Assembly: GCA_964035545.1 (NCBI GenBank)
Contig: OZ037767.1
Span: forward strand, 16,861,781 to 16,925,780
Reading direction: 5' to 3'
Source: Bugula neritina
Lineage: Eukaryota > Animalia > Bryozoa
Length of the DNA stretch: 64,000 bases
Shown in pieces: positions 6,001 to 64,000 of this stretch (the first letter of the stretch is position 1; each line of letters opens with the position of its first letter). The position numbers were made by a program, and so were the translations under genes. The notes beneath the pieces were generated by a model, which searched no databases, was not told the origin of the DNA, and saw only the letters and a program-made list of their open reading frames with translations.

Positions 6001-6200
6001 AGAAAAAATTGCGCAGACCCAGGAGGACTCTATTCACCATTAGCCATGTACGCCGGGCTGCGCGAGAAATGTGAGTAAAAGTTGTAGTGGCAAGTAATTT
6101 TAGAGTTATATAACACAATGCAGGGGTCATGCATCTATCTTGTAAATAGGTTATATCTTATATCCTGTATATAGGTCACATGTCGTATATAGGTTACATC
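1..6200 (+). repeat. ~4.3-kb tandem duplication (1-~1890 repeats at 4313-~6200; third copy from ~49338)
   Basis: The same text recurs at an offset of 4312 (ORF-track paralogs 620 and 4932). Confidence 0.9.
1460..4004 (+). pseudogene. Decayed paralogous exons of the orphan gene (exon4', 3', 4' truncated, 1', 2', 3', 4', 5')
   Basis: Exon-1-like ATGCTTGGGCGACTGTGG at 2235 with the donor changed to TT (2297). Exon-3-like at 1629 has a frameshift and a lost donor. Exon-5-like at 3798-4004 is strongly diverged. Confidence 0.75.
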
Positions 6201-10779: not shown

Positions 10780-13306
10780 TACGGACAGTGGTGTCATGGC
10801 GATCGGACGCTAAATTTTTATGATTTGAGTTCTTTACCAAATTTGGTTCAAAATAATACATAATTAGGGATAGCCTGTAGTTTAAAAATATTTTTCAAGC
10901 ATTTATAGGTACCAGAGTATTTACGAAATTATTCAAATAATTCAATTAATTTATACAATTTATTTTACACTGCCACCACCGTACCAAGATGACCAAAAGT
11001 AAAAAAATAGAATCTCGGCCAGTGAACTCTAAATCAAAACGGCTTGGAGATGGGCAGGCCGATAATAGGGGTAGCAACATTGATATCAGTAGTAACCATG
11101 AGGAAAGATGTGCCACATGCAATGAGATAGATTGCACTTTCCAAGGGACGAACAACAGGTAAATCAAGGTTCTCACTAAGTGGATTACCTGTGATCTCTG
11201 CAACCAATGGTACCATGGAATATGCCAGGACCTGCAGCCAGCTGATGTATCGTGTATAACTAAGTTGGCAGAGAAAGGCATGAGCTGGAAGTGCAGTGAC
11301 TGCAGAGATAAAACAGAAAACAGCCTATAAGGAGAGAGTCTAACACAGCCCATGACTCAAAAATCAACACAGCAGATTGACAACATAGAGAGGATAGTGA
11401 AGGAAATTGCTGAACAAAGCCATAAATTAAGTGAGATGGAACAGAAATGGTCTGATGTCGTCAAGCAAAATCTTGAGAACATTGACAAAAATAAACAGAT
11501 TGCTGCAGATGCAAAAACATTGATAGTAAAGAGTCACCAACTGAGGGAAGAAGAGAGTAGAAAGAGCAATGCTATCGTTACCGGGGTCACTGAAAAAGAT
11601 GGTAAAACCTCAATGGAGCAGATACAAGAACTAATGAGAATGGAATGTTTTACCAAAACCAACTCACCAACTCAGGCTTTTAGGCTAGGAAAAAAACAGA
11701 AAATGATGTACACAAACGTCCAATCAAGGTGAGATTTGAGAATGAGCGATCGAAATGGGAGTTCGTTAAAAGGTTCAACAATCAAATACTGAGAGAACAG
11801 GGTATTTACTGCAGACTTGATGAAAGCAAAGAAATCCGAAATCAACAATTCCAGCTGAAAAAGGAAGCTAACAGGCTTAGAGAAGAAAATACATCTATAG
11901 CATATCAAGTGAGAGACATGCAAATACAAGAAAAGCAAGCCTCGGGGGAATGGAAAGTGATGGAACAAGTCCAACAAAAGAGAGTGGCGGAATGCTGAAA
12001 GTATTCCTCGCCAACACTAGATCTGTTAAAGGTAAAATCACTGAACTGCAATTTCTCACCACAGATTCTGACATAATTTGTTTCACTGAAACACACCTAG
12101 ATGACACAATACCTAATAGCAGTATTCTACCAATCAAGAACAAAACAGTATTTCGTCGTGATAGCAACATTTGTGGGGGTGGAGTTATGAGGGCTGTATG
12201 TGACCGTTTAAATCCCAAACTAGTAGATCTTAGTGAGTATAGGGAAGAGGTGGTAGCAGTGAAAATTCAACCAAGAATGGTCATCTGCTGTTACTACAGA
12301 CCCTATGTACATCTCTCCAACACAGATGTTATAAATGATATTTTGGATTACCTACAAAGAGAGTATCAAAAGCACACTATTTTGTTTGTTGGGGACTTCC
12401 TCATTGGATGACTGTAAAAAATTTCAGCGAAACCTGGGCTCTCGTAGTACTTGGTTGGAAAAGTAGAAATTGTCATGCAACATCTTCAAGAGCAGGATAA
12501 TCAGCTTCAACTCTAAGAACGATACTCCCCAATACAAGCTTATTTGATTAGTGTTGGATCATGTTGACTCAACAAAATACCTTGGTGTAACATTGCAATC
12601 AGACTGTAAATTTGACCAGCACATCCTAAAGAAGGCATAAAAACATGCACTGTACTGGGGCCCCCAAAGGAGCAAAGCTTATTGACTAAAAAGCCCTCCG
12701 TCTCCCACACTTGGAATATGCCAGAGCAGCCGGAGACACATCCAGCAAGCACCATATGAGTATAATGGAAAATGTACAAGCAGATGCTCTGCGTTTTATC
12801 AGTAACACCAAAAAAAGAACTTACATTCTTGAGGAAATTAAAAAACTGTTTTTGGATTCACTTGATCTAAGAAGAAAAAACCGACGCATCAGCCTTCTTC
12901 TAAAAATGTTGTCTATAAGGAAAAACAACATCCAACTCTGAGTGCTGTCTATGATGATTTTCTGAATCAGCGGACCACAAGCACTGTGTAGACTGGATCT
13001 CAGGTTTCAGGACTCCCCAGATCAGTTAGAGCAAACAAGAATGGATATTTTTATAGTTTTCTCCCAAGAATGATAAGATATATGAGAATCAGCACTGATT
13101 GAGTGACTTTTCCAGAGCATTCAATAACTGTAAATCATACACAGACGAGCTGGTTAGCCTGTTTAGTTAATCTGCACAAGAATTTTAACATTATTTAAAA
13201 TACTGCTCAAGTACTGACAACTTATTTTCTATATGCGACAAAACCCTTCTTCCCTCTAGGGAGGTTCAGTGTGGGGATAACATCGGCAGACAGGTATCAA
13301 CAGGTA
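10780..13306 (+). mobile_element. Decayed non-LTR retrotransposon (CR1/L2-like LINE), copy A
   Basis: ORF1 from ATG 10989: PHD finger, coiled coil, RKSNAIVTGV and FRLGK..RPIKVRF motifs, with stops at 11160 and 11328 and a frameshift at 11690-11696. Overlapping ORF2 APE endonuclease (11950-12411: IICFTETHL, VFRRD..GGGV, YYRP, VGDF). The RT core is largely deleted; a C-terminal LEYA..ENVQ..ALRF..SLDLRRK remnant remains (12711-12941). Short CAGGTA-repeat tail. The 5' end is approximate. Confidence 0.85.
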
Positions 13307-14226: not shown

Positions 14227-17200
14227 ATGCTTGGGCGACTGTGGAATTTCCTCACTGGTGAAGAAGATGCACCTCCCAGACAGACCAGGTCAGAGTTGTC
14301 TTCTTCCTAAACCACTGTTTTACAATGTAGTGAAATAATCAAAATCTTCAGTTATTTATGAGGAATAAACTAAGCTGCAGTTTAAACAAGCTAGTAGTTA
14401 GCATAAATTTCCATATTATAGCATGAGTACCTCTATATTTCATAGAGGTTTGGGGAAAGGGTTAAGACTTATATCCTAGCAAATAAAGCTTGTGTTCAGC
14501 TATGTATGTTGTCATGTGATCAAAATGCTAGTAAGACGCCACAAGTTAATGTAGACCTCTAGACCAACTCTCATATGACACTGCTCTATCTGGGAGTAAC
14601 ATAGTAAATATAACACTGCTGCAGGCTATGTATTGTTACATCCATTCTTTCTTCACTTCAGCTCTGCTCAAAGCAACTGCTCTGTTTTTACCAGCCATGG
14701 GAGCGTGCATCACGAAGAGAAGGCGAGTTCCACCAGTCTCGCAGAGCCCTTCTCTTGTGAGCAGAGGTAGGAAAGTTACACCGTATTAAATGGACTGTAA
14801 GGTATATACTGCATGCTGAAATCATTTCTGTTTTACCTCCATCTCTGTTCTACCTCCATCTCTGTTCGACCTCCATCTCTGTTCTACCTCCATCTCTGTT
14901 CTACCTCCATCTCTGTTCTACCTCCATTTCTGTTCTACCTCCATCTCTGTTCTACCTCCATTTCTGTTCTACCTCCACCTCTGTTCCACCTCCATCTCTG
15001 TTCTACCTCCACCTCTGTTCTACCTCTATCTCTGTTCTACCTCCATCTCTGTTCTACCTCCATCTCTGTTCTACCTCCATCTCTGTTCTACCTCCATCTC
15101 TGTTCTACCTCCATCTCTGTTCTACCTCCATCTCTGTTCTACCTCCATCTCTGTTCTACCTCCATCTCTGTTCTACCTCCATCTCTGTTCTACCTCCATC
15201 TCTGTTCTACCTCCATCTCTGTTCTACCTCCATCTCTGTTCGACCTCTATCTCTGTTCGACCTCCATGTCTGTTCTACCTCCACCTCTGTTCTACCTCCA
15301 TCTCTGTTCGACCTACATCTCTGTTCTACCTCCATCTCTGTTCTACCTCCATCTCTGTTCTACCTCCATCTCTGTTCTACCTCCATCTCTGTTCTACCTC
15401 CATCTCTGTTCTACCTCCATCTCTGTTCGACCTCCATCTCTGTTCTACCTCCATCTCTGTTCTACCTCCATCTCTGTTCGACCTCCATCTCTGTTCTACC
15501 TCCATCTCTGTTCTACCTCCATCTCTGTTCTACCTCCATCTCTGTTCTACCTCCATCTCTGTTCTTACAGTGAGACCTCCATCTTCCTCCGAGTCAGACC
15601 TGGATCTGAGGTGACTCTAGTCATCCCCCGGAGGAAGAAACCGCGCAGGCCCCGGCGGACTCCATTCACTATCAGCCCTGTTCGCCGGGCTGCGCGAGAG
15701 AGGTGAGTAAAATTTGTGGTGGCAAGTGGTTTTAGAGTTATATAACACAATGCAGGGGTCATTAATCTTGTATCTTGTATATAGGTTACATTTTGTATCC
15801 TGCGTGTAGGTCACATTTGGTATCCTGTATATAGGTCACATGTTGTATCCTGTATATAGGTCACATGTTGTATCCTGTATATAGGTCACATGTTGTATCC
15901 TGTATATAGGTCACATTTGATATCCTGTATGTAGGTCACATCTGCTCACCGATGTGGGCGTCGAGGCAGGCGTTGAGGTCTCCTGTCAGGCGACTCAGTG
16001 CATCCAGCGCTCTGCCTCTGTAGACATCAACTCCCAGAAGAGGTAAGAAAGTCGTGCTGTTAGTATACTGAGATACCTGTTAGTATACTGAGATACCTGT
16101 TAGTATACTGAGATACCTGTTAGTATACTGATAGTATACTGAGATACCTGTTAGTATACTGAGTTACCTGATAATACACTGAGATACCTGATAGTATACT
16201 GAGATACCTGTTAATATACTGAGATACCTGATAGTATACTGAGATACCTGTTAGTATACTGAGTTACCTGATAGTATACTGAGATACCTGATAGTATACT
16301 GAGATACCTGATAGTATACTGAGTTACCTGATAATACACTGAGATACCTGTTAGTATACTGAGATACCTGTTAATATACTGAGATAGCTGATAGTATACT
16401 GAGATACCTGTTAATATACTGAGATACCTGATAGTATACTGAGATACCTGTTAATATACTGAGATACCTGATAGTATACTGAGATACCTGTTAGTATACT
16501 GAGTTACCTGATAGTATACTGAGATACCTGTTAGTATACTGAGATACCTGTTAGTATACTGAGATACCTATTAGTATACTGATAGTATACATGTTTACAG
16601 TTCAGAACCCGGCTGCGTGGACAGATCTGTCCAGTGCGCCACCACCAGCCAGGCTCCAGCCTCCCAGCACAGTCGGGCAAGATCTCGTCTGGAGAGAAAG
16701 ACGTCCACTGCTGGCACCACACTGAGCAGCAGAAAGCCGAGCGGCAGCGGCGTTGCTGTACCACATGAAAGGGCGACATGTGGTCCTCAGGTGGTGTTAA
16801 GTCAGCAGCCTGTTCCAGTCACCTGTTCTCAGGGAAATGTGTTTGCTATGCAAATGGCATACCACCTTGGGCACCTGACAGGCCTGCTGACTACAGCACT
16901 GTAAGTAACCTCTCTTTAACACTTGTTGACACTTACCAGTGAGCTTACTTTCCTAAGTAATTTACTTTTGTGTCTTATTGAGTGTAAATGACACACTGCA
17001 GTATTGAGTTAACCCAGCAGACCCGTAGTGTAATGGTTAACCCTCCCGCTTGCAAGCCAGATGCTTCGGGTTCCACTCCCGGTGGCGGCAAAATTTTATA
17101 AGTTTATAATTTGTGACTTGCAGCAACACTAAGGAGTCAGAGAAGAGAAAGGTAGACGCCAGCACTTTAGTCTCAACACGCTATCCTTCTCTGAAACTAC

Positions 17201-20200
17201 CCAACACCAGATCCGCTTTCACTATCAGCCCTCTCCGCAACTCTGAATCGAGAAGGTAGGAAAGTAATGGAAATCATGTCAGTGAATACTATTGCTCGAG
17301 GACTGATAACACCTACCTGTTGGTTATGGTTACACATCTTGTACCTATCATCACGTTGTGGTGTTCTGCTTCACATGTGTTCTCCATTACAGGCCTACTC
17401 TTGGGTCGCGTCTCTTCAGAAGGCAGGCTGATATAAGTATAGCCGGGCAGCTCACCCTGAGCTCTGGTGTTCCAAGAGAGACAACTCTGTGCTCAACCAT
17501 CGGTCACTCTGATTGGTCCAGTGAGACACTCTGGAAGACATCTGTTCGCAGTGCCCAGAGGTAAGGAGGGTTCCTTTATTATAATTGGAATATTGGTATA
17601 TAATTATATTATCATAATAATTTCATATAATGTTATTAGTGTAATATATTATTATATAACAATACCATCAGTATAATATATTATTGTAATATTATATAAC
17701 ATTACCATTAGTATAATATATAGTGGAATGTTATATATTACTATTAATATTAAACATCATATCTCATTGTCTCTCCAGGACCTACGTGATTCAAAATCAC
17801 TTTATCCAATCAGAGAGCATGACCGGGACTGAGCTGGATACAAAGGAAGTTTTCCGGGAAAAGAGGTAAGAAAATGTAAAAAATGAATTCATAGCTGTAA
17901 AATATTCTACTGGCCCTACTGTGATATACTGTACATAGTATTACTACTCTGTGATATACTGTACATAGTATTACTACTCTGTGATATACTGTATATAGTA
18001 TTACTACTCTGTGATATACTGTATATAGTATTACTACTCTGTGATATACTGTATATAGTATTACTACTCTGTGATATACTGTACATAGTATTACTACTCT
18101 GTGATATACTGTACATAGTATTACTACTATGTGATATACTGTACATAGTATTACTACTCTGTGATATACTGTATATAGTATTACTACTCTGTGATATACT
18201 GTATATAGTATTACTACTCTGTGATATTCTGTATATAGTATTACTACTCTGTGGTATACTGTACATAGTATTACTACTCTGTGATATACTGTACATAGTA
18301 TTACTACTCTGTGATATACTGTATATAGTATTACTACTCTGTGATATACTGTATATAGTATTACTACTCTGTGATATACTGTATATAGTATTACTACTCT
18401 GTGATATACTGTATATAGTATTACTACTCTGTGATATACTGTACATAGTATTACTACTCTGTGATATACTGTACATAGTATTACTACTATGTGATATACT
18501 GTACATAGTATTACTACTCTGTGATATACTGTATATAGTATTACTACTCTGTGATATACTGTATATAGTATTACTACTCTGTGATATTCTGTATATAGTA
18601 TTACTACTCTGTGGTATACTGTACATAGTATTACTACTCTGTGATATACTGTACATAGTATTACTACTCTGTGATATACTGTATATAGTATTAATACTCT
18701 GTGATATACTGTACATAGTATTACTACTCTGTGGTATACTGTATATAGTATTACTACTCTGTGATATACTGTATATAGTATTACTACTCTGTGATATACT
18801 GTACATAGTATTACTACTCTGTGATATACTGTACATAGTATTACTACTCTGTGATATACTGTACATAGTATTACTACTCTGTGGTATACTGTATATAGTA
18901 TTACTACTCTGTGATATACTGTATATAGTATTACTACTCTGTGATATACTGTACATAGTATTACTACACTGTGATATACTGTACATAGTATTACTACTAT
19001 GTGATATACTGTACATAGTATTACTACTCTGTGATATGCTGTATATAGTATTACTACTCTGTGATATACTGTATATAGTATTACTACTCTGTGATATTCT
19101 GTATATAGTATTACTACTCTGTGGTATACTGTATATAGTATTACTACTCTGTGATATACTGTATGTAGTATTACTACTCTGTGATATGCTGTACATAGTA
19201 ATACTACTCTGTGATATACTGTATATAGTATTACTACTCTGTGATATACTGTACATAGTATTACTACTCTGTGATATACTGTATGTAGTATTACTACTCT
19301 GTGATATGCTGTACATAGTAATACTACTCTGTGATATGCTGTATATAGTATTACTACTCTGTGATATGCTGTACATAGTAATACTGCTCTGTTAACAGCC
19401 TGGTCGCCAGCTCCAGCTCGACTATAGTGTCCAGCTCAGAAGGGTCAGATCGAAGGTCAGCTACCTACGTAGTCTCTAGACGGAGCAGCGGGTCAGAGGT
19501 CAGCTTGACTAACACAGTTAGCGAGCTGAGGTCACTGACAGAACTCGAGGAAGAGAGGTAAGATCTCACTACCAGCAAGTGTAGCTTCAGGTTGGATATG
19601 TATTGTAAATACTGTGCTACTGTGGGCTCTTATGTAGAATGATTGTCAGTAAAGAGACGTTACTTTCTTCACACAATTAGTATATATGAGGTGGGTTCAG
19701 TAATGGAGAAATTGAGAAAAACTGGTGCTCTAAATTAGAAATGTAGCACAAGGAATTGTGTTCTCACGAGAATTTCAACCTTCGCCCCAAACATAAATTT
19801 TACAATAAATTTTAAGAAAATTAGACTATCTCAATTTCTCCACTACTGCTCCTACATGTAGTATATATAGTTTGTAATGCCTTGTTGTCACTTTGTTTAT
19901 TAGCTTAGCTCTCAGTCTCTCCTCCAGCCCACCTCGCAGCCTCTCTCTCAGCCCACCTCTCAGCCTCTCTGCTCCTATACCTGACACGACACTCAGCTCT
20001 AGTCTCTCTCCAGCTTCGAGCTCAGCTGTAAGGGTTGTCTCGGGTTCCGCTCGCAGCCTCGCTCTCAGTGTGGCTCGCGGATTCCAGCCAGAGACGCCGT
20101 CGGCTTTGAGCTCAGCTGCGGCTCCTACTGAAGACCAAAGTTCTCTCATTGAGTCAGTGACATATTTGGTCGATACGGCAACACACGACTCTACAGGTAC

Positions 20201-23200
20201 ACAGAGTGGTGCTCCCTCTGTACCCAACACCTCCGCACGCAGAGCTCCTCCACTGCTAGTCTTGAGCTCGGCTCTTGGGTCTGTGTCCAGCTCCTCAATG
20301 AGTTCAGATTGTAGTCTGACTCAGGGAGTGACTGCTGGCACGTTATCAGCTGTCAGCTCGACTTGCAGTTCTTCTATGAGCCTCGCTGATAGCTATGGAA
20401 GTCCACCTTCTGCTGCAACACCTTGTGACTTGAGCTCGGCATGCAGTTCTGTTCATAGTCTCGCTGCCTCCCTTGGACACCCGCCATCTCCTGGCACACC
20501 ATCTGCCTTGAGCTCGGCTTGCAGTTCTTCTATAAACCTCGCTGCCAGTCTAGGAGCTCTGCCATCTCTTGGAACTCCATCAGTTTTAAGCTCGGCCGAT
20601 AGCTCTGCTCTGAGCCTCAATGATAGCCATGGAGAACCATTGGCTGCTGGAACACCATCTGTCCTGAGTTTGGCTTGCAGTTCTTCTATAAGCCTCGCTG
20701 CCAGTCTAGGTACTCCGCCATCTCCTGGCACACCATCTGCTTTGAGCTTGGCATGCAGTTCTGTTCTGAGCCTCGATGATAGCCATGGATGCCCGCCATC
20801 TCCTGGTACTCCGTCAATCCTTAGCTCAGCTTGCAGTTCTACTACAAGCCTCGATGCCCCTCTAGGAGGTTCACCGTCAGCTTTAAGCTCGGCTTGTAGC
20901 TCCTCTATAAGTCTCACCTCCAGCCATGGCAGTGCTCCACCTGCCGCAACGCCATCAGTTCTGAGCTTGGCTTGCAGTTTGGTTACAGGCCTCAATGATG
21001 GTCATGGAGATCCAGCGTCTTTTGCAACACCGTCTGCCCTGGGCTTGACTCCAAGGTCAGTTGACGAGACTGTCTCTGGCTCTTCTTCAACTTCAGCTGC
21101 CAGCCTGGGTTGTGAATTAGAAGCCGAGACACCGCCTGTCTCTAGCTCGACAGCAGGAACTGAATCCTGCTGCACATTGCAAGACACTCTCATCCCGACT
21201 GTTCGCCAAACACGCTCTCTCTTTTCGTGTGACACTTGCGACTGTGAGATGGATTCGTCGGCTGGAGAAATCAGTAATCATGTCTCTTCATCTCAAAAAT
21301 GTTTGCACAGGTTAGAAAGTAATATTTCTTAGTAAAACTTGTTGAAGTACTGCTGAAATAATTTTACAATTATTCCTGCTATAAATAGTGTTAGAAAACG
21401 CATTTAATATACTTTAGGGTTAAAGTTAATGAAAAAAGCTCTTCTGTCATCTAGAAATAGCCACTTTTGTGTTTAGTTACTTTCTCAGTCCTTCCATGTT
21501 ATTCCTGCTACATGCTTCTTATAATACATTGTACCTGACTTTACAGTGTGACTGTGAGCGTTAGTGATAAGGCCATCCAGGCCGATCCAGTCCACCAGGC
21601 TGAACCAGTCCACCAGGCTGAACCAGTCCACCAAGCTGGTCTAGTCCATAAGGCCATCCAAGCTGATCCGGTTCACCAGGCCGATCCAGCCCACCAGGGC
21701 GGTCCAGCCGATAAGGCCATTCATGCCGATCCAGTCTACCATGACAGTCCAGCCCATGAGGCCATTCAAGCTGATCCAGTTTGCCAGGCTGATTCAGCCC
21801 ACAAGGCTATCCAGGCCAATTCAGTCCACCAGGTCGATCCAGTCTACCAGGTCGATCCAGTCTACCAGGACAGTCCAGCTCAACAAGCTGGTCCTGCCCA
21901 TGAGGCCATCCAAGCTGATTCAGTTCACCAGGCTGATCCAGCCCACCAGGCCGGTCCAGCCCACGGTGATGTCAGACCTACTCAGAGCCACTCTACTCAG
22001 TGTGCGCACCATGTTAGCGACACGCTGTCTGCTGCTGTGCAAACTCTAGACAACAAAGTTACTGAGGAGAGGTAAGAAAACTCCATAGAAGTTTATTTGT
22101 TGTATTTTCACTTCTTCTTCCATTAATATTCATATTCCGTATTATACATTATCTCTTCACTTCTTTCAACTTCACTTCTTTACACATGCATCCAGTTCGG
22201 CATTGTGACAGCATATGCAGTATAATACCATAGTATCTCTATGCCGTTCTTCAGCCTCTTTTCTGTTTATGTTCAGCTCACCTCCAGCTGGTCCTCCGAC
22301 ACCAGAAGACAAAGCCAGTCCTGCTGGTCTAGACGGTAAGGTAGAGTCTCCAGTGGCTGTGCCAGGCTGCAGCAGAGAGAGGTAAGTAGCTCGTTGTGTA
22401 CGGCGTAACTCAGTCTGATGTACTTCAGCTCTACGGAGCTTAGTTGTCTGTGTGGAGCCACGTTTAATATATATACCCTTGTCATCTATAGATCTACCAC
22501 TAGCCTCGCTGTCAGCCACTTCCTGTATGGTGACGGTCCGAACTCGAACCGCAGTTCTCACCTTGACTCTGTTTCCACTTCCTCTCTGGAGTCTGTCCAT
22601 AGCTCGGCACTCGGCTATACAACCACGACCAGTGTAGATGATGATTCACCTCAGCCAGATGTTCGGGGATGGACTCTCAGTCCAGTACACAGTTTCACCT
22701 TCTCTGGGAGTTCCAACTCTGAAAGTAATCATGAGACTTTTGTCAAAGAACACTGCGAGCCAAGGTTAGAACCTCACCATATACTGTTTCCTGTATCACT
22801 TGTCAGCGTAGAGAAAGCTGCAAACAGAAAGTGTAGATAGCATAGCTTGATTTATTATTTCTCATTTTAGTACATCCAGACCACAACCACGCTGGAGAAC
22901 TCTAATGTCTGGGATGGCTGTTCCTGTTAGCAGACTCATTAGGAGGCCTGTCACCATTCCTCCCACCGTCAGGTATGTCTACCACCAGACTATGTAACAT
23001 TGTCTGGTAATTTCCTCTACAGTTGTAGTATAGTTATGTCAACCACCAAGTTATGAACTCTCTTCAATGTTGAAGTGAGTTGTAGTTGTTGAACTTGTTG
23101 TTATATTCTCCAGACCGGCTGCCCACGCTGTGTATGTTGGTGGAGCACCTCCAGCAGTGCAGTGTGTTACCGCTTTCCTGCCCACTCCACGGCTCTATGG

Positions 23201-24784
23201 AGCACCAGCCATGAGAGCTAGCTCAAGCAGAGGGTTGAATGGAGCGAGGTAGGACTAATACATGTACAGTTTTGGTGGGAACACGTATTTTATAATAAAA
23301 TAAGTCTATACTGGGGTATATGAAATGTGCTGTATAGTAAATTATTTACGTTATAAACAGAATCTGAATATATTTATATTATTATAATACAAACATGATC
23401 CAATTATATTCTGTGTTTCACAGCACTGTCACCCGATGCCTTTGCCGAAAGGAAGTTCCGGCAAGCTCGATGCTGAAGCGGTATAGCTCAGAGCATGTTT
23501 TTGACCTTGGCCCTTCTACTAAGAGATCGTCTGACACCTATTCGAGATCTAGTAGAAAAGGGTGAGCACATTTTCTCAACTGTGTTTGCGTTAAAGATTC
23601 AGAGCTGTGAATTATAATACTTATGCTCTCCCAATATATACCACTCTCAATATAGGTGTAATCCATTGGGTGGGTGTACCAATACTTATACTGAAGTTGA
23701 GTGTAAACTCGTTCATTCTATCATGCTCATGATATATTAGTTTGAGCAGACTACAACTACGTGTCTGTATTTTCAGCGCCAATCTTCTATGTTCATGTCA
23801 CGGGGAGCACACCGACTGTGAGGAAAGGTAAGAACTGTAGAGTTTGCGTTCTAATGAGGGATATGTGTTGCAATGGTTGTATTTCATTTCTACCACTGAA
23901 CCTGTTATTTGTAAAGTTTTCCAGCTGTTTGTCAGCATGCATTGAAGTCATTTCCTGTTGAGGTACAGCAGCTGAGTAGTTAGTATTGCTGTGAAATCTG
24001 AACATCAATAGAGTTGTAATACTTTAGTTTGATACCTTTTAGCACAATCTCTGAGAGTGAGTCACTGCAAGCCTGTGTTGGAAAGGGTAAGCAGCCGGCT
24101 AAGAAACCGCTTAAAAAGGGACCTCTTAAAAAGGGACCTCCTAAAAAAGGTTCTCTCACAAAAGAACCTCTTAAGAAGGGACCTCTCACAAAAGGACCTC
24201 TTAAGAAGGGACCTCTCAAAAACGGACCTCTTAAAAAAGGACCTCTTACAAAAGGACCTCTCACAAAAGGACCTCTTAATAAAGGACCTTTTAATAAAGG
24301 CCCTCTTACAAAAGGACCTCCTAAAAAGACACCGCTTAGAAAGTCATTAACCAATGGCAGAGCACCAGCTTCTAACCGCCAAGCTGGAGGTGTTGGAAAT
24401 CGTCTGGGGCCTCCAAAAAGAGGAGCTTTGAGCAAAGCACTAAAATTAGGGGCAAAGACTCCTGTAGCTCCTAAAAGAAATGCACCCAGTTCCGGGAGCA
24501 AGCTAGGCTCACGTGCCGCAGCGTCTAAAAAGAAGCAGTCATGTCCTGATGTGTTCACCAGGCTGTCAAGTACACCTCTGCGCGGCGCACCCAGGCGGCT
24601 GAACAGCACTCCAGCTGTCAAGCCACCAGTCAAGTCAAAAACGTCTCGGCCAGCAACCTTGCTTAGTCAGCAGTCCTCTTCTGCCCCACAGCGCAAGATG
24701 AGGCAGTTGAATGCCTCGAAAGCATCGGCTGATGATCTAGAGAAGCGTTGTCCAGTGCTGAAACAGCGCATCCGCAAATCATAG
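14227..24784 (+). CDS. Orphan multi-exon gene, copy A: ~1,576-aa Ser/Pro/Arg/Lys-rich, probably intrinsically disordered repeat protein (18 coding exons)
   Basis: Manual GT-AG splicing gives one stop-free frame. Exons: 14227-14288, 14662-14766, 15571-15702, 15935-16042, 16601-16900, 17124-17255, 17393-17560, 17779-17865, 19399-19557, 19904-21310, 21547-22071, 22277-22381, 22492-22764, 22871-22972, 23114-23248, 23424-23561, 23777-23827, 24043-24784 (total 4731 nt). Start context gccATG; begins MLGRLWNFLTGEEDAPPRQT, ends LKQRIRKS*. All 16 internal exon lengths are multiples of 3. Exons are GC-richer than introns. Track ORFs 16617, 17358, 19893, 21548, 22418 and 24029 are exons of this gene. An acceptor at 14205 implies an upstream non-coding exon. 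Confidence 0.85.
14827..15564. repeat. 17-bp minisatellite (CTGTTCTACCTCCATCT) x~43 in intron 2
   Basis: Direct reading. It explains the 17-aa-period ORF 14813-15706. Confidence 0.95.
15765..15941. repeat. 25-bp repeat (TGTATCCTGTATATAGGTCACATGT) x7 containing the exon-4 acceptor
   Basis: TAG|GT(C/T)ACAT occurs at 25-nt spacing, with AG ending at 15784, 15809, 15834, 15859, 15884, 15909 and 15934. Confidence 0.85.
16057..16590. repeat. 20-bp minisatellite (TAGTATACTGAGATACCTGT/A) x~26 in intron 4; x~11 at 62843-63076
   Basis: Direct reading. Confidence 0.95.
17017..17090 (+). mobile_element. tRNA-derived SINE head / pseudo-tRNA in intron 5 (copy at ~63504-63578)
   Basis: A-box TAGTGTAATGG, degenerate B-box GGTTCCACTCC, and a CTTGCAA anticodon-like loop (Ala-TGC-like). 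Stems pair poorly, and copy B has a broken B box. Confidence 0.6.
17917..19392. repeat. 30-bp minisatellite (CTGTGATATACTGTAYATAGTATTACTACT) x~49 in intron 8
   Basis: Direct reading. It explains ORFs 17916-19376 (-) and 19036-19395 (+). Confidence 0.95.
20260..21045 (+). repeat. Coding 78-bp (26-aa) repeat, LSSACSSxxSLxxSxGxPPSPGTPSx, ~10 copies in exon 10
   Basis: The periodicity is visible in the ORF 19893-21332 translation. Confidence 0.8.
21565..21965 (+). repeat. Coding repeat QADPVH / (K/E)AIQAD in exon 11
   Basis: Translation of ORF 21548-22075. Confidence 0.8.
24101..24340 (+). repeat. Coding 15-bp repeat, KGPL(K/T) x16 in the last coding exon
   Basis: Translation of ORF 24029-24784. 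Confidence 0.85.
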
Positions 24785-25007
24785 TCTCCCGAACTTCTCA
24801 GTCCAAGTTGTTTGGTGGTAGACTGTTGTTGGTTGCAGTTATCCCTGAGTAATGTGTCTCATTGTGCAGGTGGAATACAATGTATCTCATCCATTGATGT
24901 CTTTGATTCTGTTGGCTTGTACAGCTGCTACTTCTACTTTTACTGCTACCCCTATTACTACTGCTCACACTACTCAGTACACTAAGCCCGAGGATGACTG
25001 GATCATC

Positions 25008-25013
25008 AATAAA
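25008..25013 (+). promoter_or_regulatory. Candidate polyadenylation signal of the orphan gene
   Basis: AATAAA ~220 nt downstream of the stop codon. Confidence 0.35.
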
Positions 25014-28000
25014 AAGCTGGACTCTACAAATACAGCAAACCTCTGAACGACGTGAATGGTTCATCTACTAAGGGTGGATGCGCCTCGTCCCGTAGTGATG
25101 CTGTGGTTCACCAGGCACATCGAGACGGTCATCTGATTACTGGTTCTTGAGAAATTATCAGATAGCTAGATAGAGACACCAAACTCTGCAGCTTACCAAC
25201 ATTTCTCATTCTCTCCTCTTTCGGCACATTTTCTTTCGCTATTCAAACCTTTATTTCTTCTCCTCTTTGATGAAAGAATATAACTCAATGTGACTGTTGA
25301 TCTTTATTAGTAAAGGTAAACTGTTCTTTCTGTTTGTATTTGTTTATACTCTTGCTGTTGGTTACAAAATCAATATGTATTTTAGTCAATTGCAAGATCT
25401 GCTAGTTTACTAATATAAAGAGATATTTATTAAAGATTAGTGTGAGCAGCAATCTATTTTTCTGAACAAAAGCAGACCAGCTATGTTTTAAAAATATATA
25501 AATTGTTGTAGATTTATTTCGGAAGAATGAATATTACACTAAGGCTGGTATCCTCACATATTTGGCTGAGTTGAATGAAGATTATTCTCTGAAATAGTTT
25601 TGCATCTCAGACCTTTACTAGTTGGTTCCACTAAAATGCACAAAGAAGTATCGGCCAGCAACTTTGCTTAGTCAGCAGTCCCCTTCTGCCCCACAGCGCA
25701 CGGTGAGGCAGTTGAATGCCTTGAAAGCATCGGCTGCTGATTGAGAAAGGCGTTGTCTGGTGCTAGAAAAGCGCGTAGCAGAGTAGAGCTGGACTCTACA
25801 AATACAGCAAACTCTGAACGACGTGAATGGTTCATCTACTAAGGGTGGATGCGCCTCGTCCCGTAGTGATGCTGTGGTTTACCAGGCACATCAAGACGGT
25901 CATCTGATTACTGGTTCTTGAGAAATGATCAGATAGCTGGGTAGAGACACCAAACTCTGCAGCTTACCAACATTTCTCATTCTCTCCTCTTTCGGCACAT
26001 TTTCTTTCGCTATTCAAACCTTTAAGCCTTCTTTTCTCTGGTTGAGTTTGACTGATAATCTATTGGTAAAGGTAAGCTTTTCTCTAAATTTTAAAACATT
26101 ATTTTATGTTTGTATCTTTTTATACTATAGAAACGCCACCTCTTACTGCTGATTACAAAACATGCATTTTGGTCAACTGCAAGAATTGTTAACTCACAGA
26201 TATAAAGGGTTAAATACTAAAGCTTGATGTAAACAGCAATCCCAATTTTCTTTCCTAATAAAAGCAGGCCGACTGTGCATATTTTATTAATAAATTATAG
26301 ATTTTATTGTAGACTTATTTCGGAAGAATGAATATCATTCTAAGGCTGGTATCCTCACATATTTGGCTGAGTTGAATGAAGATTAATCTCTGGAATATTT
26401 TCACACCTCAGGAGTTTACAGAAGAAACAAACCTTCTGTTAAAAACTTCTTTCTGTCGGGCAAACGTCTGAACATTCATCACTCGAGATCACAATTGCAC
26501 CTGAACTTCTGAATTTCAAGCTGACTGCAATACTGACTCACGCTTGGCAGTGTTCAGGTAAGTTTTTTTTAATATTTCTTTTTTCTAATTATCTACATCG
26601 TGACTGAGTGAAATTCATTTGAGATGGTTTTTTTCTAATTTTTTTGGGCCACTTAGGATTACAAGCTTATAGAAAATATACTAAGTTTAATATTTATGCA
26701 CACTTTTCATCATCATTACCTATGCTGTTATTCAATCTTGTAGATGGTACAAATCCTTTTTGGCTGGTAAAACACTACTATATGTTTATTGGATGAGCAA
26801 CATATTCCTCATACTCTACTCTGTATGTTGACATTCACACATCTACATCTTAGTAAACTGAAGAGTAGTTTATTAGTGGATCTTCTTAGAACTCCTCTAC
26901 AATAAATACTCGGCTGGACACACCATGTCTTTCACTGTTGGTCAGATGAGTCTGAAACTCTATATAGAGGTGAGTCCTTCTTCTACATTCTCTTAGCATT
27001 TTGTTTCTTGACTTCCTATAATATCTGGTTAGAAGGTCTCTCAGCATGTTTCTGTCAGTGTTTTTAAATGCATACTTTTTAACTTTTCTCACCTATCATG
27101 CATAGAACGTTCCTTTAGAGGTTGTTGATACAATTTTTAGAGAATAGTTTAATTTCTGCACCTAATAGACATATTAAATATTATAGATGGTGATATCACT
27201 TGTTGGCTGGTACAATACTACATTGTTAGTGGATTCTCAACTCTGCATCTCTCCTGGATTTCAAGTAGACGAAACAGTATTCTATTTCTCAAAACATTTA
27301 CTAGATTGCATTTCTCAATGAGCCAACAGAACATGTCTCCAATTCTTATTTTCAAATTTGGGGATGGAAGAATTTAGGCTGGACTTAAGTCAGATGTGGA
27401 TCATCTTACTAACATAGAACATTCTATTCTACTAGAGCAATGGTGAGTTTGTGAAATGCTTCTAAAAACTGTGATCTGCTGTGAGGACAAACTTGTGTGA
27501 GCATTCGATGGCAATAGTTGATATAATTCTTTCAAGAGTTAAAGTTGCTGTGGTAAATGATTATTAATAGGTTATGGTGGTTTTTACAGAGTCTCTCACT
27601 GAATCTATGTTGAGGACAATATCACTTGTTCAACTTGTACAATCACTGATAGATGATTCCACTTTCTTCTCCTTGTAAATGTCTGGATTCTATAAATAGA
27701 CTGACACAGATATCTGCTGGACTCAGAGTCTCTCTACTAACAACTCTATTCAGGGTTTAACTTCTTCCTATCTTGTTATAATATAGGTGAGTTTATGTAG
27801 TAGCAGAAGGCACAATTTAGCTTCTCTCATTTCCATTATCATTGCACAATGGCCAGGCTGTATATAAGTTTGACTATGAAGATGCATTATAAGTTCTGTT
27901 AGAAACTCTTTACAGATATTTATATTTTGGGCAGGCACTTCAGTAAAACAATATTAAGTTAGTTAGTATCAAACAGGTTTAAAAGTAGCTTATATAGTTT

Positions 28001-31074: not shown

Positions 31075-32808
31075 AAAAATATATTATGGTAAAATGTATA
31101 GTAAAATAGTGTAAACTTTGTCTTCTGGTTTCAGCATTTCGCACTAAAATTTCTATGGAATTTACAAAACAGTTTTTAGAGCTTGGAAACCTTCTAGAAG
31201 CTTTTTACTAATATTAGGCTTCTAATACACCAATTAGGTTTACAATAGGCATACAATATATGTATTGCTTTCAGAATATTGCTATTTTAGCAAAACTCCT
31301 CTCAGATTCTTTTTATTTGGCTTTTTAGCTTCTGCACACATTCCACAAGATCTTCATCTTGACATGTCATAACACTTGCTGGGCTGAAAGAAACGTTTAT
31401 ATGCTGGTGAAAACTTCTTCCTTTCTGTTCTGCAAACTGGTTGAAGAAGATAACTCAATGTGACTGGTGATCTTTACTGGTAAAGGTAAGCTTTTCTCTC
31501 TGTTTGTATTTGTTTATACTCTAATTGCTGTTGATTACAAAATGATTATACATTTTAGTCAATTGCAAGGTCTGCTTATAATACACTATTATATAGGTTT
31601 AATTACCAGAGATTCATGTGAACAGCAATTCGTTTTCTTTCTGAACAGAAGCAGACCACCTATGTTATTGAAATATATATATTGTTGTAGAACTATTTAA
31701 GAAGAATGAGTATCACACTAAGGCTGGTATCCTCACATATTTGGCTGAGTTGAATGAAGATTTATTCTCTGGGATATTTTCACACCTCAGAACTTTACAG
31801 AACAAACAAATCTCCATGTTCTGCTGAGAACTTTTTTCTTTCTCTTGTGCTTTGTGCTTCCAAATATTTATCACTTGAGATCACAATTGCACCTGAACTT
31901 CTGAATCTACAAGTAGACTGAGCCAGAGTCTACAGCACTTACTCAGAATAATATATCCAAAACTTCCACCTGCACTTCTTTGAGCTCTAAAGTAAGCTTC
32001 TGGTTTCTATTATCTATCTTAGTGAAGGTTTAGCATAAATTCTTGTAAACTCTCTTAGTTCATCAGACACGCCTATTTTTTAAATGTTTTGTAAATATTT
32101 GAAATAGGTTTTCAGAGTGACCTACACCGTTTATGAATGTTTGTTTGTTTCAGCTTATGAAACATTGTTTCCCTATAGAGTTTTCAAACTTATTGATTGG
32201 ATCGTTTGATCTCCCCGTGCTATGGTGGTGACATAATTTATTTGGCAGATGGAGAATGTATTTCTAATGTCATCTCCTGCTCACAGAGTTTCCTCTCAAA
32301 CCTTTAACCAAAACCAAAAGTGAGTTATTGGAAATTGGCATTTTGAGCAGTTCACTTATAGTTCAGTTGAAATGTTTTATTGTGAGAATTTTTATTAAAA
32401 TTGATGGGTTTTCGTAGATTTCCCACATCATGTGGAGACAAACTGAACCGTAGTTAATAGTGATGTTACTGCATGCAGTACTGTGGACTATTGGAGTTGT
32501 GGTACCACCTTGTGGGCCTCGGAATCTGGGAGCATATCTGAGCAGTAACACTAGAGATGGTAATAATGCATAATATACTATATTCCCTACTGTTACAATT
32601 TTAACATGTGTGGCATTTGAATTTGTTTGTGTCTCTCCAAGTGTTTAGGAAGAGGCAGCTGGTCAAATCTATTAGTTTAAGATGTGTAATGTATCTATTA
32701 TTAGATAGTAATATAAGATATGTATTACATAATAACATAATGTATCTATCATTAGATGATGTAATGGCTTTTTATGTTCTCTGTTTGTAACCAGGTACAC
32801 AGTGTTTT

Positions 32809-50794: not shown

Positions 50795-53700
50795 GCTAGA
50801 TGTAGCACAAAAGTTTCTTGTTAGACGTGCACTGATCAGGCGACCCAGCGCATCCAACTTCATAACTCTGAAAAAATAAACCCCCTGAAGAGGTAAGAAA
50901 ATTGTGCTGACAATGCACTGAGCTACCTGTCAGTTTACTGCGAAGGTATACTGTTCTTGCAGTGAGACCTCGATCTTTTTCGGAGTGAAAACTAGCTCTG
51001 AGTTCATTTTAGTCCTTCCACAGAGAAAAAATTGCGCAGACCCAGGAGGACTCCATTCACCATTAGCCATGTACGCCGGGCTGCGCGAGAAACGTGAGTA
51101 AAAGTTGTAGTGGCAAGTAATTTTAGAGTTATATAACACAATGCAGGGGTCATGCATCCATCTTGTAAATAGGTTATATCTTATATCCTGTATATAGGTC
51201 ACATGTCGTATATAGGTTACATCTGCTCACCAATTTGCACGTCAAAGCAGGTGCTATAGTTTCCCGTCAGACATGCGCTGATCAGACGACTTAGTACACC
51301 CAAGTTTCTGTCTCTAAAGAAATCAACTCCATGAAGAGGTAAAAAAAGTGTGCTGACAATGCACTGAGCTACCTGTCAGTTTACTGAAATGGTATACTGT
51401 TCTTGCAGTGAGACCTCAATCTTTTTCAGAGTAAAAACTAGCTCTGAGTTTACTTTAGTCATTCCACCGAGAAAAAAATTGCGCAGACCCAGGAGGACTC
51501 CATTCACCATTAGCCATGTACGCCGAGCTGCGCAAGAAATGGGAGTAAAAGTTGTAGTGACAAGTAGTTTTAGAGTTATATAACACAATGCAGGGGTCAT
51601 GCATCCATCTTGTAAATAGGTTATATCTTGTATCCTGTATATAGGTCAGATGTTGTACATAGGTCACATCTGCCCACCAATGTGCAAATCGATGCAGGTG
51701 TTAAGGTTTCCTGTCAGACATGCGCTGATCAGACGACTTAGTGCATCTAACTTCATGTCTCTGAAGAAATCAACTCCCTGAAGAGGTAAGAAAATTGTGC
51801 TGACAGTGCACTGAGCTACCTGTCTGTTTACTGGGATGGTATACTGTTTTTTTGCAGAGAGACCTCGATCTTTTTCAGAGTAAAAACCAGCTCTGAGTTC
51901 ATTTTAGTCATTCAACAGAAAAAAAATTGCGCAGACCCAGGAGGACTCCATTCACCATTAGCCATGTACGCCGGGCTGCGCGAGAAAGGTGAGTAAAAGT
52001 TGTAGTGGCAAGTAATTTTAGAGCTATATAACACAATGCAGGGGTCATGCATCCATCTTGTAAATAGCTTATATCTTGTATCCTGTATATAGGTCACATG
52101 TTGTATTTAGGTCACATCTGCCCACCAATGTGCAAATCGATGCAGGTGTCAAGGCTTCCTGTCAGACATGCGCTGATCAGACGACTTAGTGCATCCAACT
52201 TCCTGTCTCTGAAGAAATCAACTCCCTGAAGAGGTAAGAAAATTGTGCTGACAGTGCACTGAGCTACCTGTCTGTTTACTGGGATGGTATACTGTTTTTT
52301 TGCAGTAAGACCTCAATCTTTTTCAGAGTAAAAACTAGCTCTGAGTTTACTTTAGTCATTCCACCGAGAAAAAAATTGCGCAGACCCAGGAGGACTCCAT
52401 TTACCATTAGCCATGTACGCCGAGCTGCGCAAGAAATGGGAGTAAAAGTTATAGTGACAAGTAGTTTTAGAGTTATATAACACAATGCAGGGGTCATCAA
52501 TATTTAATGATTTTGTATATAGGTTATATCTTGTATCCTGTATATAGGCCACATCTTGTATCTTGTTTATATGTCATGCCATGTATCCCGTAAGTAGGTT
52601 ACATTTTGTATCCTGTATATAGGTCACATGTTGTATATAGGTCACATCTGCCCACCAATGTGCAAGTCGATGCAGGTGTTAAGGTTTCCTGTCAGACATG
52701 CGCTGATCAGACGACTTAGTGCATCCAACTTCCTGTCTCTAAAAAAATCAACTCTCTGAAAGGGTAAGAAAATTGTGCTGACAGTGCACTGAGCTACCTG
52801 TCAGTTTACTGAGATGGTATCCTGTTTTTGCAGAGAGACCTCAATCTTTTTCAGAGATAAAACTAGCTCTGAGTTCATTTTAGTCATTCCACAGAGAAAA
52901 AAATTGCGCAAACCCAGGAGGACTCCATTCACCATTAGCCATGTACTCTGGGCTGCACGAGAAAAGTGAGTAAAAGTTGTAGTGGCAAGTAGTTTTAGAG
53001 TTATATAACGCAATGCAGGGGTCATGCATCCATCTTGTAAATAGGTTATATCTTGTATCCTGTATATAGGTCACATCTGCTCACCAATGTGGACGTCGAG
53101 GCAGGTGTTAAGGTTTCCTGTCAGACATGCGCTGATCAGACCACTTAGTGCATCCAACTTTTTGTCTCTGAAAAAATCAACTCCCTGAAGATATAAGAAA
53201 ATTGTGCTGACATGCACTGAGCTACCTGTCAGTTTACTGAGATGGTATACTGTTCTTGCAGTGAGACCTCGATCATTTTCAAAGTAAAAACTAGCTCCGA
53301 GTTCATTTTAGTCATTCCACCAAGAAAAAAACTGCGCAGACCCAGGAGGACTCCATTCACCATTAGCCATGTACGCCGGGCTGCGCAAGAAATAGGAGTA
53401 AAAGCTGTAGTGACAAGTAGTTTTAGAGTTATATAACACAATGCAGGGGTCATTCATCTTGTATTTTGTATATAAGTTATATCTTGCATTCTGTATATAG
53501 GTCTTATGTTGTATATAGGTCACATCTGCTTGCCAATGTGGACGTCGAAGCAGGTGTTGAGGTTTATGTGCACATAATGATTATGATGTAATAAACCTAT
53601 GGCTTCACATTTGATCTCGATTTGTCTGTAAGAGAATCCTTTTTGCTGTCTTACTATTAGTATTATATCGATATATCTAATTCTTTGCTTTTCCACAGTC

Positions 53701-61300: not shown

Positions 61301-64000
61301 ATGCTTGGGCGACTGTGGAATTTCCTCACTGGTGATGAATATGCACCTCCCAGACAGACCAGGTCAGAGTTGTCTTCTTCCTAAACCATTGTTTTACAAT
61401 GTAGTGAAATAATCAAAATCTTCAGTTATTTATGATGAATAAACTAAGCTGCAGTTTAAACAAGCTAGTAGTTAGCATAAATTTCCATATTATAGCATGA
61501 GTACCTCTATATTTCATAGATGTTTGGGGAAAGGGTTATGATTTATATCCTAGCAAATAAAGTTTGTGTTCAGCTATGTATGTTGTCATGTGATCAAAAT
61601 GCTAGTAAGACGCCACAAGTTAATGTAGACCTCTAGACCAACTCTCATATGACACTGCTGTATCTGGGAGTAACATAGTAAACATAACACTGCTGCAGGC
61701 TGTGTATTGTTACATCCATTCTCTCTTCACTTCAGCTCTGCTCAAAGCAACTGCTCTGTTTTTACCAGCCATGGGAGCGTGCATCACGAAGAGAAGGCGA
61801 GTTCCACCAGTCTCGCAGAGCCCTTCTCTTGTGAGCAGAGGTAGGAAACCTACACCGTATTAAATGTACTGTGAGGTATATACTGCATGCTGAAATCACC
61901 TCTGTTCTACCTCCATCTCTGTTCTACCTCCATCTCTGTTCTACCTCCATCTCTGTTCTACCTCCATCTCTGTTCTACCTCCATGTCTGTTCTACCTCCA
62001 TCTCTGTTCTACCTCCATCTCTGTTCTACCTCCATCTCTGTTCTACCTCCATCTCTGTTCTACCTCCATCTCTGTTCTACCTCCATCTCTGTTCTACCTC
62101 CATCTCTGTTCTACCTCCATCTCTGTTCGACCTCCATCTCTGTTCTACCTCCATCTCTGTTCTACCTCCATGTCTGTTCTACCACCATCTCTGTTCTACC
62201 TCCATCTCTGTTCTACCTCCATCTCTGTTCTACCTCCATCTCTGTTCTACCTCCATCTCTGTTCTACCTCCATCTCTGTTCTACCTCTATCTCTGTTCTA
62301 CCTCCATCTCTGTTCTACCTCCATCTCTGTTCTACCTCCACCTCTGTTCTACCTCCATCTCTGTTCTACCTCCATCTCTGTTCTACCTCCACCTCTGTTC
62401 TTACAGTGAGACCTCCATCTTCCTCCGAGTCAGACCTGGATCTGAGGTGACTCTAGTCATCCCCCGGAGGAAGAAACCGCGCAGGCCCCAGCGGACTCCA
62501 TTCACTATCAGCCCTGTTCGCCGGGCTGCGCGAGAGAGGTGAGTAAAAGTTGTAGTGGCAAGCGGTTTTAGAGTTATATAACACAATGCAGGGGTCATTA
62601 ATCTTGTATCTTGTATATAGATTACATTTTGTGTCTTGTTTGTAGCTCACATTTTGTATCCTGCGTGTAGGTCACATGTTGTATCCTGTATATAGGTCAT
62701 ATTTTGTATTCTGTATGTAGGTCACATCTGCTCACCGATGTGGGCGTCGAGGCAGGCGTTGAGGTCTCCTGTCAGGCGACTCAGTGCATCCAGCGCTCTG
62801 CCTCTGTAGACATCAACTCCCAGAAGAGGTAAGAAAGTCGTGCTGTTAGTATACTGAGATACCTGATAGTATACTGAGTTACCTGATAGTATACTGAGAT
62901 ACCTGTTAGTATACTGAGATACCTGTTAGTATACTGAGATACCTGTTAGTATACTGAGATACCTGTTAGTATACTGAGATACCTGATAGTATACTGAGAT
63001 ACCTGATAGTATACTGAGTTACCTGTTAGTATACTGATAGTATACTGAGATACCTGATAGTATACTGTTAGTATACATGTTTACAGTTCAGAACCCGGCT
63101 GTGTGGACAGATCTGTCCAGTGCGCCACAACCAGCCAGGCTCCAGCCTCCCAGCACAGTCGGGCAAGATCTCGTCTGGAGAGAAAGACGTCCACTGCTGG
63201 CACCACACTGAGCAGCAGAAAGCCGAGCGGCAGCGGCGTTGCTGTACCACATGAAAGGGCGACATGTGCTCCTCAGGTGGTGTTAAGTCAGCAGCCTGTT
63301 CTAGCCACCTGTGCTCAAGGGAATGTGTTTGCTATGCAAATGGCATACCACCTTGGGCACCTGACAGGCCTGCTGACTACAGCACTGTAAGTACCCTCTC
63401 TTTAACACTTGTTGACACCTACCAGTGAGCTTACTTCCCTAAGTAATTTACTTTTGTGTCTTATTGAGTGTAAATCACACACTGCAGTATTGAGTTAACC
63501 CAGCAGACCCCGTAGTGTATTGGTTAACCCTCCCGCTTGCAAGCCAGATGCCTCAAGTTTCACTCCCGGTGGCGGCAAAATTTTATAAGTTTATAATTTG
63601 TGACTTGCAGCAACACTAAGGAGTCAGAAAAGAGAAAGGTAGATGCCAGCACTTTAGTCTCAACACGCTATCCTTCTCTGAAACTACCCAACACCAGATC
63701 CGCTTTCACTATCAGCCCTCTCCGCAACTCTGAATCGAGAAGGTACGAAAGTAATGGAAATCATGTCAGTGAATACTATTGCATGAGGACTGATAACACC
63801 TACCTGTTGGTTATGGTTACACATCTTGTACCTATCATCACGTTGTGGTGTTCTGTTTCACGTGTGTTCTCTATTACAGGCCTAATATTGGGTCGCGTCT
63901 CTTCAGAAGGCAGGCTGATATAAGTATAGCCGGGCAGCTCACCCTGAGCTCTGGTGTTCCAAGAGAGACAACTCTGTGCTCAACCATCGGTCACTCTGAT
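61301..64000 (+). CDS. Same orphan gene, copy B (exons 1-7, truncated by the window end)
   Basis: Exons 61301-61362, 61736-61840, 62407-62538, 62721-62828, 63087-63386, 63611-63742 and 63880->64000. Lengths and phases match copy A, with no stop or frameshift. About 15 substitutions versus copy A by manual comparison. Confidence 0.8.
61898..62400. repeat. 17-bp minisatellite x~29 in intron 2 of copy B
   Basis: Same unit as 14827-15564, with fewer copies. Confidence 0.95.

Follow-up and report, generated by a model that had tools for sequence, protein, structure and literature searches.

A putative bryozoan gene in which all 17 predicted introns lie in phase 2, and how such a layout may have arisen

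How does a gene composed of exons that do not resemble one another come to carry all of its introns in one phase, and in the rarest one? This question is raised by a predicted 18-exon gene at 14227-24784 of the window, by which we mean the whole stretch of bryozoan DNA analysed here (64,000 nucleotides (nt); C3:16861781-16925780, within a 216-Mb assembly). A preliminary description made from the letters of this DNA had proposed the gene and noted that every intron interrupts a codon after its second base, that is, in phase 2.

The gene model and its intron phases

The gene model was rebuilt from an exhaustive listing of the open stretches between AG and GT that belong to the 2-2 class, namely those flanked by phase-2 introns on both sides. 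The proposed 18-exon model was recovered exactly, and it comprises 4,731 nt (1,576 codons and a stop codon) with no internal stops. The layout that had been claimed for it was also reproduced: 17 of 17 introns lie after codon base 2, the split codon is of the AG|N type in 15 of 17 cases, with CT|C (intron 5) and GG|C (intron 16) as the exceptions, and all 16 internal exons are multiples of 3, ranging from 51 to 1407 nt. By individual codon, the tally is AG|C seven times, AG|T four times, AG|G three times and AG|A twice, besides CT|C and GG|C. The model frame is the sole open frame in 14 of the 16 internal exons, exons 2 and 17 having one more each, and 8 of the 16 measure 102-138 nt.

The AG|N codons, which encode Ser or Arg, are a by-product of phase 2 and not a second independent observation, because a consensus donor of the form ...AG|GT in phase 2 leaves AG as codon bases 1 and 2. 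In 13 of the 17 introns, bases +2 to +4 make up a stop codon (AG|G followed by TAA, TGA or TAG), and retention of any of these 13 would meet this donor-formed stop.

Phase 2 had been described as the least common phase, and this agreed with our comparison. It accounts for 21% of human introns (PMC3632108) and for 11 of 50 introns that we inferred in the myosin and kinesin motor domains of the same genome, using exon-by-exon matches to hidden Markov models (HMMs), frame compatibility, HMM continuity and splice-site scores. The phases of these 50 introns divide 23/16/11, which is an ordinary distribution, and a bias of the spliceosome or of the whole genome toward phase 2 was not seen among them. 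At a probability of 0.22 per intron, 17 phase-2 introns out of 17 would be expected with a probability of 0.22^17 = 6.6e-12. The all-phase-2 pattern is not a product of chance, because the baseline is split in this ordinary way.

Coding status, conservation and distribution

Consistency of the frame cannot validate a model of 2-2 exons by itself, because any such exon can be added or removed without cost to the frame, and independent evidence was sought. Genome searches revealed three gene copies in tandem, 50-56 kb apart on contig C3. The 18 exons, their open frames, the AG/GT sites and the phases are common to the three, whose exon lengths vary only in exons 10 and 11. An ortholog in B. neritina was located via the hypothetical protein EB796_001983 on L008 (VXIV02000218.1). 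The DNA of the window is ~80% identical to the B. neritina assembly GCA_010799875.2, introns included, which suggests that the source of the window is a relative or a divergent lineage of B. neritina, distinct from that assembly.

None of the 34 splice dinucleotides is lost in copy 2, in copy 3 or in the ortholog of B. neritina. At the intron identity of 79.4% to B. neritina, the chance of keeping every AG and GT is ~1.5e-7. Most exons are 82-93% identical to those of B. neritina versus 79% for the introns; exons 3, 4, 8 and 11 do not rise above the intron level. Indels relative to B. neritina are multiples of 3 in 13 of 14 cases in exons versus 11 of 49 in introns (Fisher p = 2.7e-6), and the one frame-breaking exon indel is a 10-nt gap near the 3' end in the B. 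neritina assembly at NCBI. The ratio of nonsynonymous to synonymous substitution rates (dN/dS), measured against the ortholog and between the paralogues, is 0.47-0.51 in the model frame versus 0.72-1.08 in the other two frames. The strongest constraint was found in exons 13-16 (0.11-0.38). Taken together, the intact paralogues, the kept splice sites, the frame-preserving indels and the frame-specific dN/dS argue that the locus is a genuine protein-coding gene under moderate purifying selection. The preliminary description had pointed out that any internal exon could be skipped without losing the frame, and indeed all 16 belong to the 2-2 class in the three paralogues and in the ortholog. The all-phase-2 layout is older than the split from the B. 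neritina lineage. The NCBI assembly of B. neritina (L008) also shows frameshifting indels in exons 9, 10 and 18, which are absent from two independent Joint Genome Institute (JGI) contigs (L009/L010).

The predicted protein has ~1,500 amino acids (aa) and is of low complexity, with 18% Ser and an abundance of Ala, Pro, Leu and Thr. The segments encoded by exons 3 and 6 are basic and those of exons 10 and 11 acidic (net charge -20 and -17), and the pentapeptide tail of the KKGPL type encoded by exon 18 has a net charge of +54. No signal peptide is apparent at the N-terminus MLGRLWNFLTGEEDAPP, which has no hydrophobic core when read by eye, not by a predictor. The protein had been called disordered, and on this point the evidence is divided. 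Disorder-promoting residues make up 60% of the composition, and an AlphaFold model of exon 10 showed no confident element, with a mean predicted local distance difference test score (pLDDT) of 31 from an alignment of only 4 rows. On the other hand, the charge-hydropathy test is borderline: it placed 11 exons on the disordered side and 7, with exon 10 slightly so, on the ordered side, and the whole protein, with H = 0.457 and the boundary at 0.420, falls a little to the ordered side. Disorder of the predicted protein is thus plausible. As to its function, we can offer only a tentative guess, that it may be an intracellular, heavily phosphorylatable scaffold whose basic tail would bind an acidic partner, such as nucleic acid or the cytoskeleton.

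The gene had also been called an orphan, and this was borne out. In exon-by-exon searches, whose search set did not include other bryozoan genomes, the B. neritina proteins P0001 and P0002 were the sole matches. A HMMER search with the 468-aa exon against 1.84 billion representatives matched only a B. neritina fragment, and no match was found in the ESM Atlas. Membership of a known family was rejected, as no exon has a meaningful Pfam match; there were only low-complexity matches below the cut-off to extensin and HRP. A nominal short match to Ribosomal_L18_c in the exon-11 repeats was also rejected, as no stretch passed on its own. Within the reach of these searches, the gene appears to be restricted to Bugula-type bryozoans. 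The idea of a modular gene family did not hold in the form proposed, since the family extends to three tandem copies and one ortholog and no exon was found in other genes. When exons 5, 10, 13 and 18 were searched against their own genome, the matches were confined to the three tandem copies, to decayed remnants nearby and to repeats that are K/P-rich but unrelated.

The coordinates of the exons, the other gene copies and the repeats around them are collected in Table 1.

Table 1. Exons of the predicted gene and associated features (window coordinates unless a contig is named; identities relative to B. neritina)
Feature	Position	Strand	Observations
Exon 1	14227..14288	+	ATG, 20 codons and AG; donor CAG|GTCAGA; ATG and donor kept in B. 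neritina (L008:2467-2528), AUGUSTUS start identical; dN/dS 0.44
Exon 2	14662..14766	+	105 nt, 2-2; AG/GT kept in all copies and B. neritina; indels only 3 and 9 nt; dN/dS not <1
Exon 3	15571..15702	+	132 nt; basic (RRKKPRRPRR, FTISP motif); strong donor GAG|GTGAGT; dN/dS 0.30
Exon 4	15935..16042	+	108 nt (B. neritina 123 nt, 15-nt indel); splice sites kept; weakly conserved, 78% identity, dN/dS 0.65
Exon 5	16601..16900	+	300 nt; ends CT|gtaagt; 90% identity, 0 indels; dN/dS 0.46
Exon 6	17124..17255	+	132 nt; 93% identity; splice sites kept
Exon 7	17393..17560	+	168 nt; 87.5% identity; splice sites kept
Exon 8	17779..17865	+	87 nt; least conserved, 70% identity (below intron level); open frame and AG/GT kept in all four sequences; may be weakly constrained or optional
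Exon 9	19399..19557	+	159 nt, as in contig L009 of B. neritina (7-nt difference at the acceptor in the NCBI assembly); in-frame alternative acceptors 19411, 19417
Exon 10	19904..21310	+	1407 nt; Ser/Ala/Leu/Pro-rich, 78-nt (26-aa) repeats; copy lengths 1407, 1407 and 1500 nt, B. neritina 1191 nt, frame preserved in each; dN/dS 0.48-0.71
Exon 11	21547..22071	+	525 nt; acidic, (A/D)PVHQ-type repeats of 18/27/45/63 nt; copy lengths 525, 345 and 363 nt, B. neritina 483 nt, each divisible by 3 and free of stops
Exon 12	22277..22381	+	105 nt; donor GAG|GTAAGT; 3-nt indel; dN/dS 0.41
Exon 13	22492..22764	+	273 nt; 89% identity; dN/dS 0.31 relative to B. neritina, between copies 0-0.1; three copies only in genome search
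Exon 14	22871..22972	+	102 nt; dN/dS 0.27
Exon 15	23114..23248	+	135 nt; most constrained, 93% identity, dN/dS 0.11
Exon 16	23424..23561	+	138 nt; ends GG|gtgagc; 92% identity; 3-nt indel; dN/dS 0.38
Exon 17	23777..23827	+	51 nt; splice sites kept; split codon TG|N in B. neritina; dN/dS 0.20
Exon 18	24043..24784	+	KKGPL-type 15-nt repeats, conserved C-terminal part; 76% identical to B. neritina hypothetical protein EB796_001983; dN/dS 0.32-0.52; TAG stop 24782-24784; AATAAA at 25008, 3' of the exon
Tandem copy 2, start (exons 1-7)	61301..64000	+	continues to window-equivalent 74684; 18 exons intact, same phases
Tandem copy 3	C3:16981408-16993040
Six exon-3/exon-4 pseudo-exon pairs	50963..53563	+	decayed tandem array upstream of copy 2; lost donors, 1-nt frameshifts, stops
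Homologous remnant	1628-7737		upstream of copy 1
Intronic minisatellite	14823..15565		17-nt unit, intron 2 (Tandem Repeats Finder)
Intronic minisatellite	15768-15941		25-nt unit (Tandem Repeats Finder)
Intronic minisatellite	16057-16582		20-nt unit (Tandem Repeats Finder)
Intronic minisatellite	17919-19392		30-nt unit x49 (Tandem Repeats Finder)

Origin of the uniform phase

We regard it as moderately probable, taking the factual parts and the interpretation jointly, that this is a genuine Bugula-restricted coding gene and that its uniform phase 2 records how the gene was built. The uniform phase can be read as a building history because only 2-2 exons are joinable to a gene that has a phase-2 intron. 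A phase-2 intron would have been present first, and from then on only 2-2 exons could have been added, duplicated or inserted without loss of the frame. The locus would have kept adding and duplicating such pieces, and fast divergence (dN/dS ~0.5) would then have erased most of the similarity between exons.

Duplication is found at this locus on several scales, namely units of 15-78 nt inside exons, intronic minisatellites, exon pairs of 450 bp and a gene unit of 50 kb. The repeats inside exons 10, 11 and 18 (78/156 nt, 18-63 nt and 15 nt, respectively) were gained or lost as whole units between copies, and the length variation among copies consists of these repeat units of 26, 6-9 and 5 aa. 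The preliminary description had spoken of exon duplications inside the gene as well as around it. Inside the gene, this was not supported: among 78 exon pairs only exons 3 and 6 are weakly alike (z = 4.9), both having 132 nt and the motif TPFTISP/SAFTISP at the same offset (shuffle p = 0.0025, uncorrected). At the DNA level, the comparison of the 78 pairs gave nothing beyond a 21-nt motif. Exon duplication as a visible origin of the gene was thus rejected, as this weak match is all that it left. Around the gene, duplicates are indeed present on the upstream side, as decayed pseudo-exons. Each gene copy is preceded by partial copies of exons 1-5 (window 1628-7737 and 46223-54538), and the copies of exons 3, 4, 1 and 2 were rejected as extra coding exons on account of lost donors, 1-nt frameshifts or stops. 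A copy of exon 1 at 53854-53915 matches it at 100% identity and retains the donor, and another at 7056-7117 is 98% identical; such a copy could be an alternative first exon or a relic.

The introns vary mainly by their arrays, which explain most of the size difference between the gene copies. Intron 8, with its 30-nt minisatellite, measures 1,533, 5,076 and 3,303 nt in the three copies, and the array is shorter in B. neritina. Because it is present in B. neritina and highly variable between copies, this minisatellite is old and unstable. An origin of the introns from introners or transposable elements was rejected, as the exon flanks share no sequence except the intron 4 minisatellite; in this comparison of exon flanks the introns are not a repeat family. 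A repeated element with open reading frames (ORFs) of coiled-coil type lies ~2-3 kb upstream of both gene copies (11331-12408 and 58734-59800). It gave no Pfam family above the cut-off and may be a retroelement remnant.

Several observations weigh against the proposed building history and must be set beside it. The match between exons 3 and 6 is not significant after correction for 78 pairs, and similarity between exons is nearly absent. The 18 exons are present in all four gene copies (the three and that of B. neritina), and no gain, loss or swap of an exon was seen. The 50-intron baseline is our own heuristic inference of splice sites and not an annotation. The only public run that holds the locus was judged to be DNA, because its contigs run through introns, for example at 21957-22539. 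The B. neritina annotation was made with AUGUSTUS and transcriptome hints (PMC7576161), and there the gene is split into three models (651, 346 and 215 aa), the second of which ends at the TAA formed by the exon 17 donor. A wrongly included exon costs nothing in frame, and the weakly conserved exons 2, 4 and 8 could be optional or spurious.

Among the alternatives, the one that stands best is that the uniform 2-2 design serves a function, in that exons are skipped, repeated or swapped by splicing to yield many isoforms of a fast-evolving disordered family. Such mixing of exons is possible by design, as predicted from the frame only, since every internal exon is frame-neutral. It is also in line with the alternative acceptors of exon 9, which are in frame and 12 and 18 nt apart, with the low pLDDT, which is consistent with disorder, and with exons 8, 4 and 2, which are weakly constrained, as cassette exons often are. 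However, all 18 exons are kept in every copy and in the ortholog, with variation confined to the interior of exons, and the family is limited to three tandem copies with no module common to other genes. By the charge-hydropathy test the protein is not clearly disordered, and the sole public run with the locus is DNA. We hold this explanation to be unlikely.

Slightly less likely is that the gene grew at its 3' end through stop codons that became splice donors. A terminal ORF that ends in ...AG G|TAA, G|TGA or G|TAG resembles a 5' splice site, so that the stop could be spliced out and a downstream exon joined. An intron that arises in this way is necessarily in phase 2, and therefore repetition of the process would yield a gene that is wholly in phase 2 although its exons are unrelated. 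The exons here are mutually unrelated, the gene is an orphan, and partial copies of its 3' end lie downstream of the present stop codon. Moreover, the stop triplet at +2 to +4 occurs in 13 of 17 donors, compared with 23 of the 50 baseline introns from conserved genes of this genome (Fisher p = 0.047), but this enrichment is marginal and comes from one gene and a small heuristic baseline, and GTAAG and GTGAG are the plain donor consensus. No intermediate is known, such as a shorter ortholog ending at one of the stops, and today's stop codon (TCA TAG tct) does not resemble a donor. With regard to the region 3' of the stop, the final ~135 nt of coding sequence recur, together with what follows them, once in the window (25641-25774) and three times in B. 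neritina. The regions concerned are 24636-26419 and 31444-31798 of the window and L008:11979-15023, and these repeats bear on the 'non-coding exons' that have been proposed after the stop.

We also think it improbable, a little more so than the conversion of stops, that the model is partly an artefact, in that some of the 18 exons were chosen for their fit to phase 2 while the true mRNA has fewer exons or other ones. Any open 2-2 stretch could have been added without penalty; conservation of exon 8 is below that of the introns, exon 2 has a dN/dS >1, the exon 4 acceptor is weak and lies at the edge of a minisatellite, and the lengths of the AUGUSTUS models in B. neritina differ from the sums of our exons. 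On the other hand, 34 of 34 splice dinucleotides and all open frames are kept in the four gene copies, exons 2, 4 and 8 included, the indels in these three exons are 3, 9 and 15 nt, and removal of any of them leaves the other introns in phase 2.

Finally, the mundane contributor considered in the preliminary description, a pure coincidence by which AG|GT sites fall into the AGY/AGR codons of a Ser/Arg-rich protein, is insufficient and hardly credible: Ser does make up 18% of the residues, and AGN accounts for 42% of the Ser and 52% of the Arg codons, but only 165 of 425 coding AG (39%), and 35% of MAG, occupy codon positions 1-2, so that 15 AG|N out of 15 would be expected from codon use at ~1e-7 to 7e-7 (0.388^15 = 6.8e-7), which contradicts composition as the sole cause of phase 2.

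Comparison with known systems and significance

Genes with a single intron phase are known in several systems. The SCPP genes and the fibrillar collagens have phase-0 introns, and elastin and extracellular modules are of the 1-1 type. The present gene resembles them in having one phase throughout, in the repetitive or low-complexity character of the protein and in a modularity of exons that preserves the frame. In contrast, those genes are in phase 0 or 1, their products are secreted and their exons are recognisably repeated, whereas here all introns are in phase 2, the N-terminus read by eye gives no sign of a signal peptide, and the exons cannot be recognised as duplicates of one another. 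A modular gene of the exon-shuffling type would likewise have the same phase on both sides of its internal exons, as is the case for 16 of 16 here, but our exons are not recognisably similar to one another and the modules were not found in other genes.

Xiong et al. (2019, PMC6564038) reported that the leucine-rich repeat (LRR) genes of Tetrahymena contain arrays of 90-bp exons flanked by phase-2 introns. The two systems agree in their long runs of 2-2 exons, and both are lineage-specific, fast-evolving and growing by duplication in unstable regions. The Tetrahymena exons, however, are homologous, exactly 90 bp long and encode the known LRR fold in thousands of genes, whereas the bryozoan locus is a single triplicated gene with unrelated exons of 51-1407 nt that match neither LRR nor any other Pfam family. 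Schad et al. (2013, PMC3632108) linked phase-symmetric human exons with disordered regions, and class 2,2 was the only symmetric class that was not significantly over-represented. This agrees with our locus in tying symmetric exons to low-complexity or disordered segments as modular units, although it is a genome-wide tendency there and a whole 18-exon gene of the 2-2 type here. Beside the known single-phase genes, a uniformly phase-2 gene of heterogeneous and unrelated exons looks new.

Two further observations were made in this genome during the analysis of the motor proteins. Near full-length and almost intron-free matches to myosin and kinesin motors were found on contigs C58, C101, C126, C127, C148, C207, C233 and others (e.g. 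C127:14897-16990). The matches of this type read through many TAA and TAG codons and not through TGA, which indicates that a putative ciliate, with a code in which TAA and TAG are sense codons, was co-assembled with the bryozoan. In a muscle-type myosin at C1:10716394-10721861, adjacent exon pairs match the same HMM positions (90-117 and 90-121; 175-216 and 174-207), and this would be the pattern expected of mutually exclusive exons.

Single-phase genes are classic evidence on the addition and shuffling of exons. The known cases are in phase 0 or 1 or are arrays of identical duplicated exons, and here unrelated exons share the rarest phase. For now the value of the locus is limited, as it represents a single gene family. 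If the conversion of stops to donors were true, young genes would have a way to grow longer, by making a splice donor out of their own stop codon. The three young paralogues, the ortholog and the visible decayed duplicates provide tractable material for comparison, and with them the locus can address whether uniformity of phase comes about by exon duplication, by insertion into an ancestral intron or by conversion of a stop into a donor.

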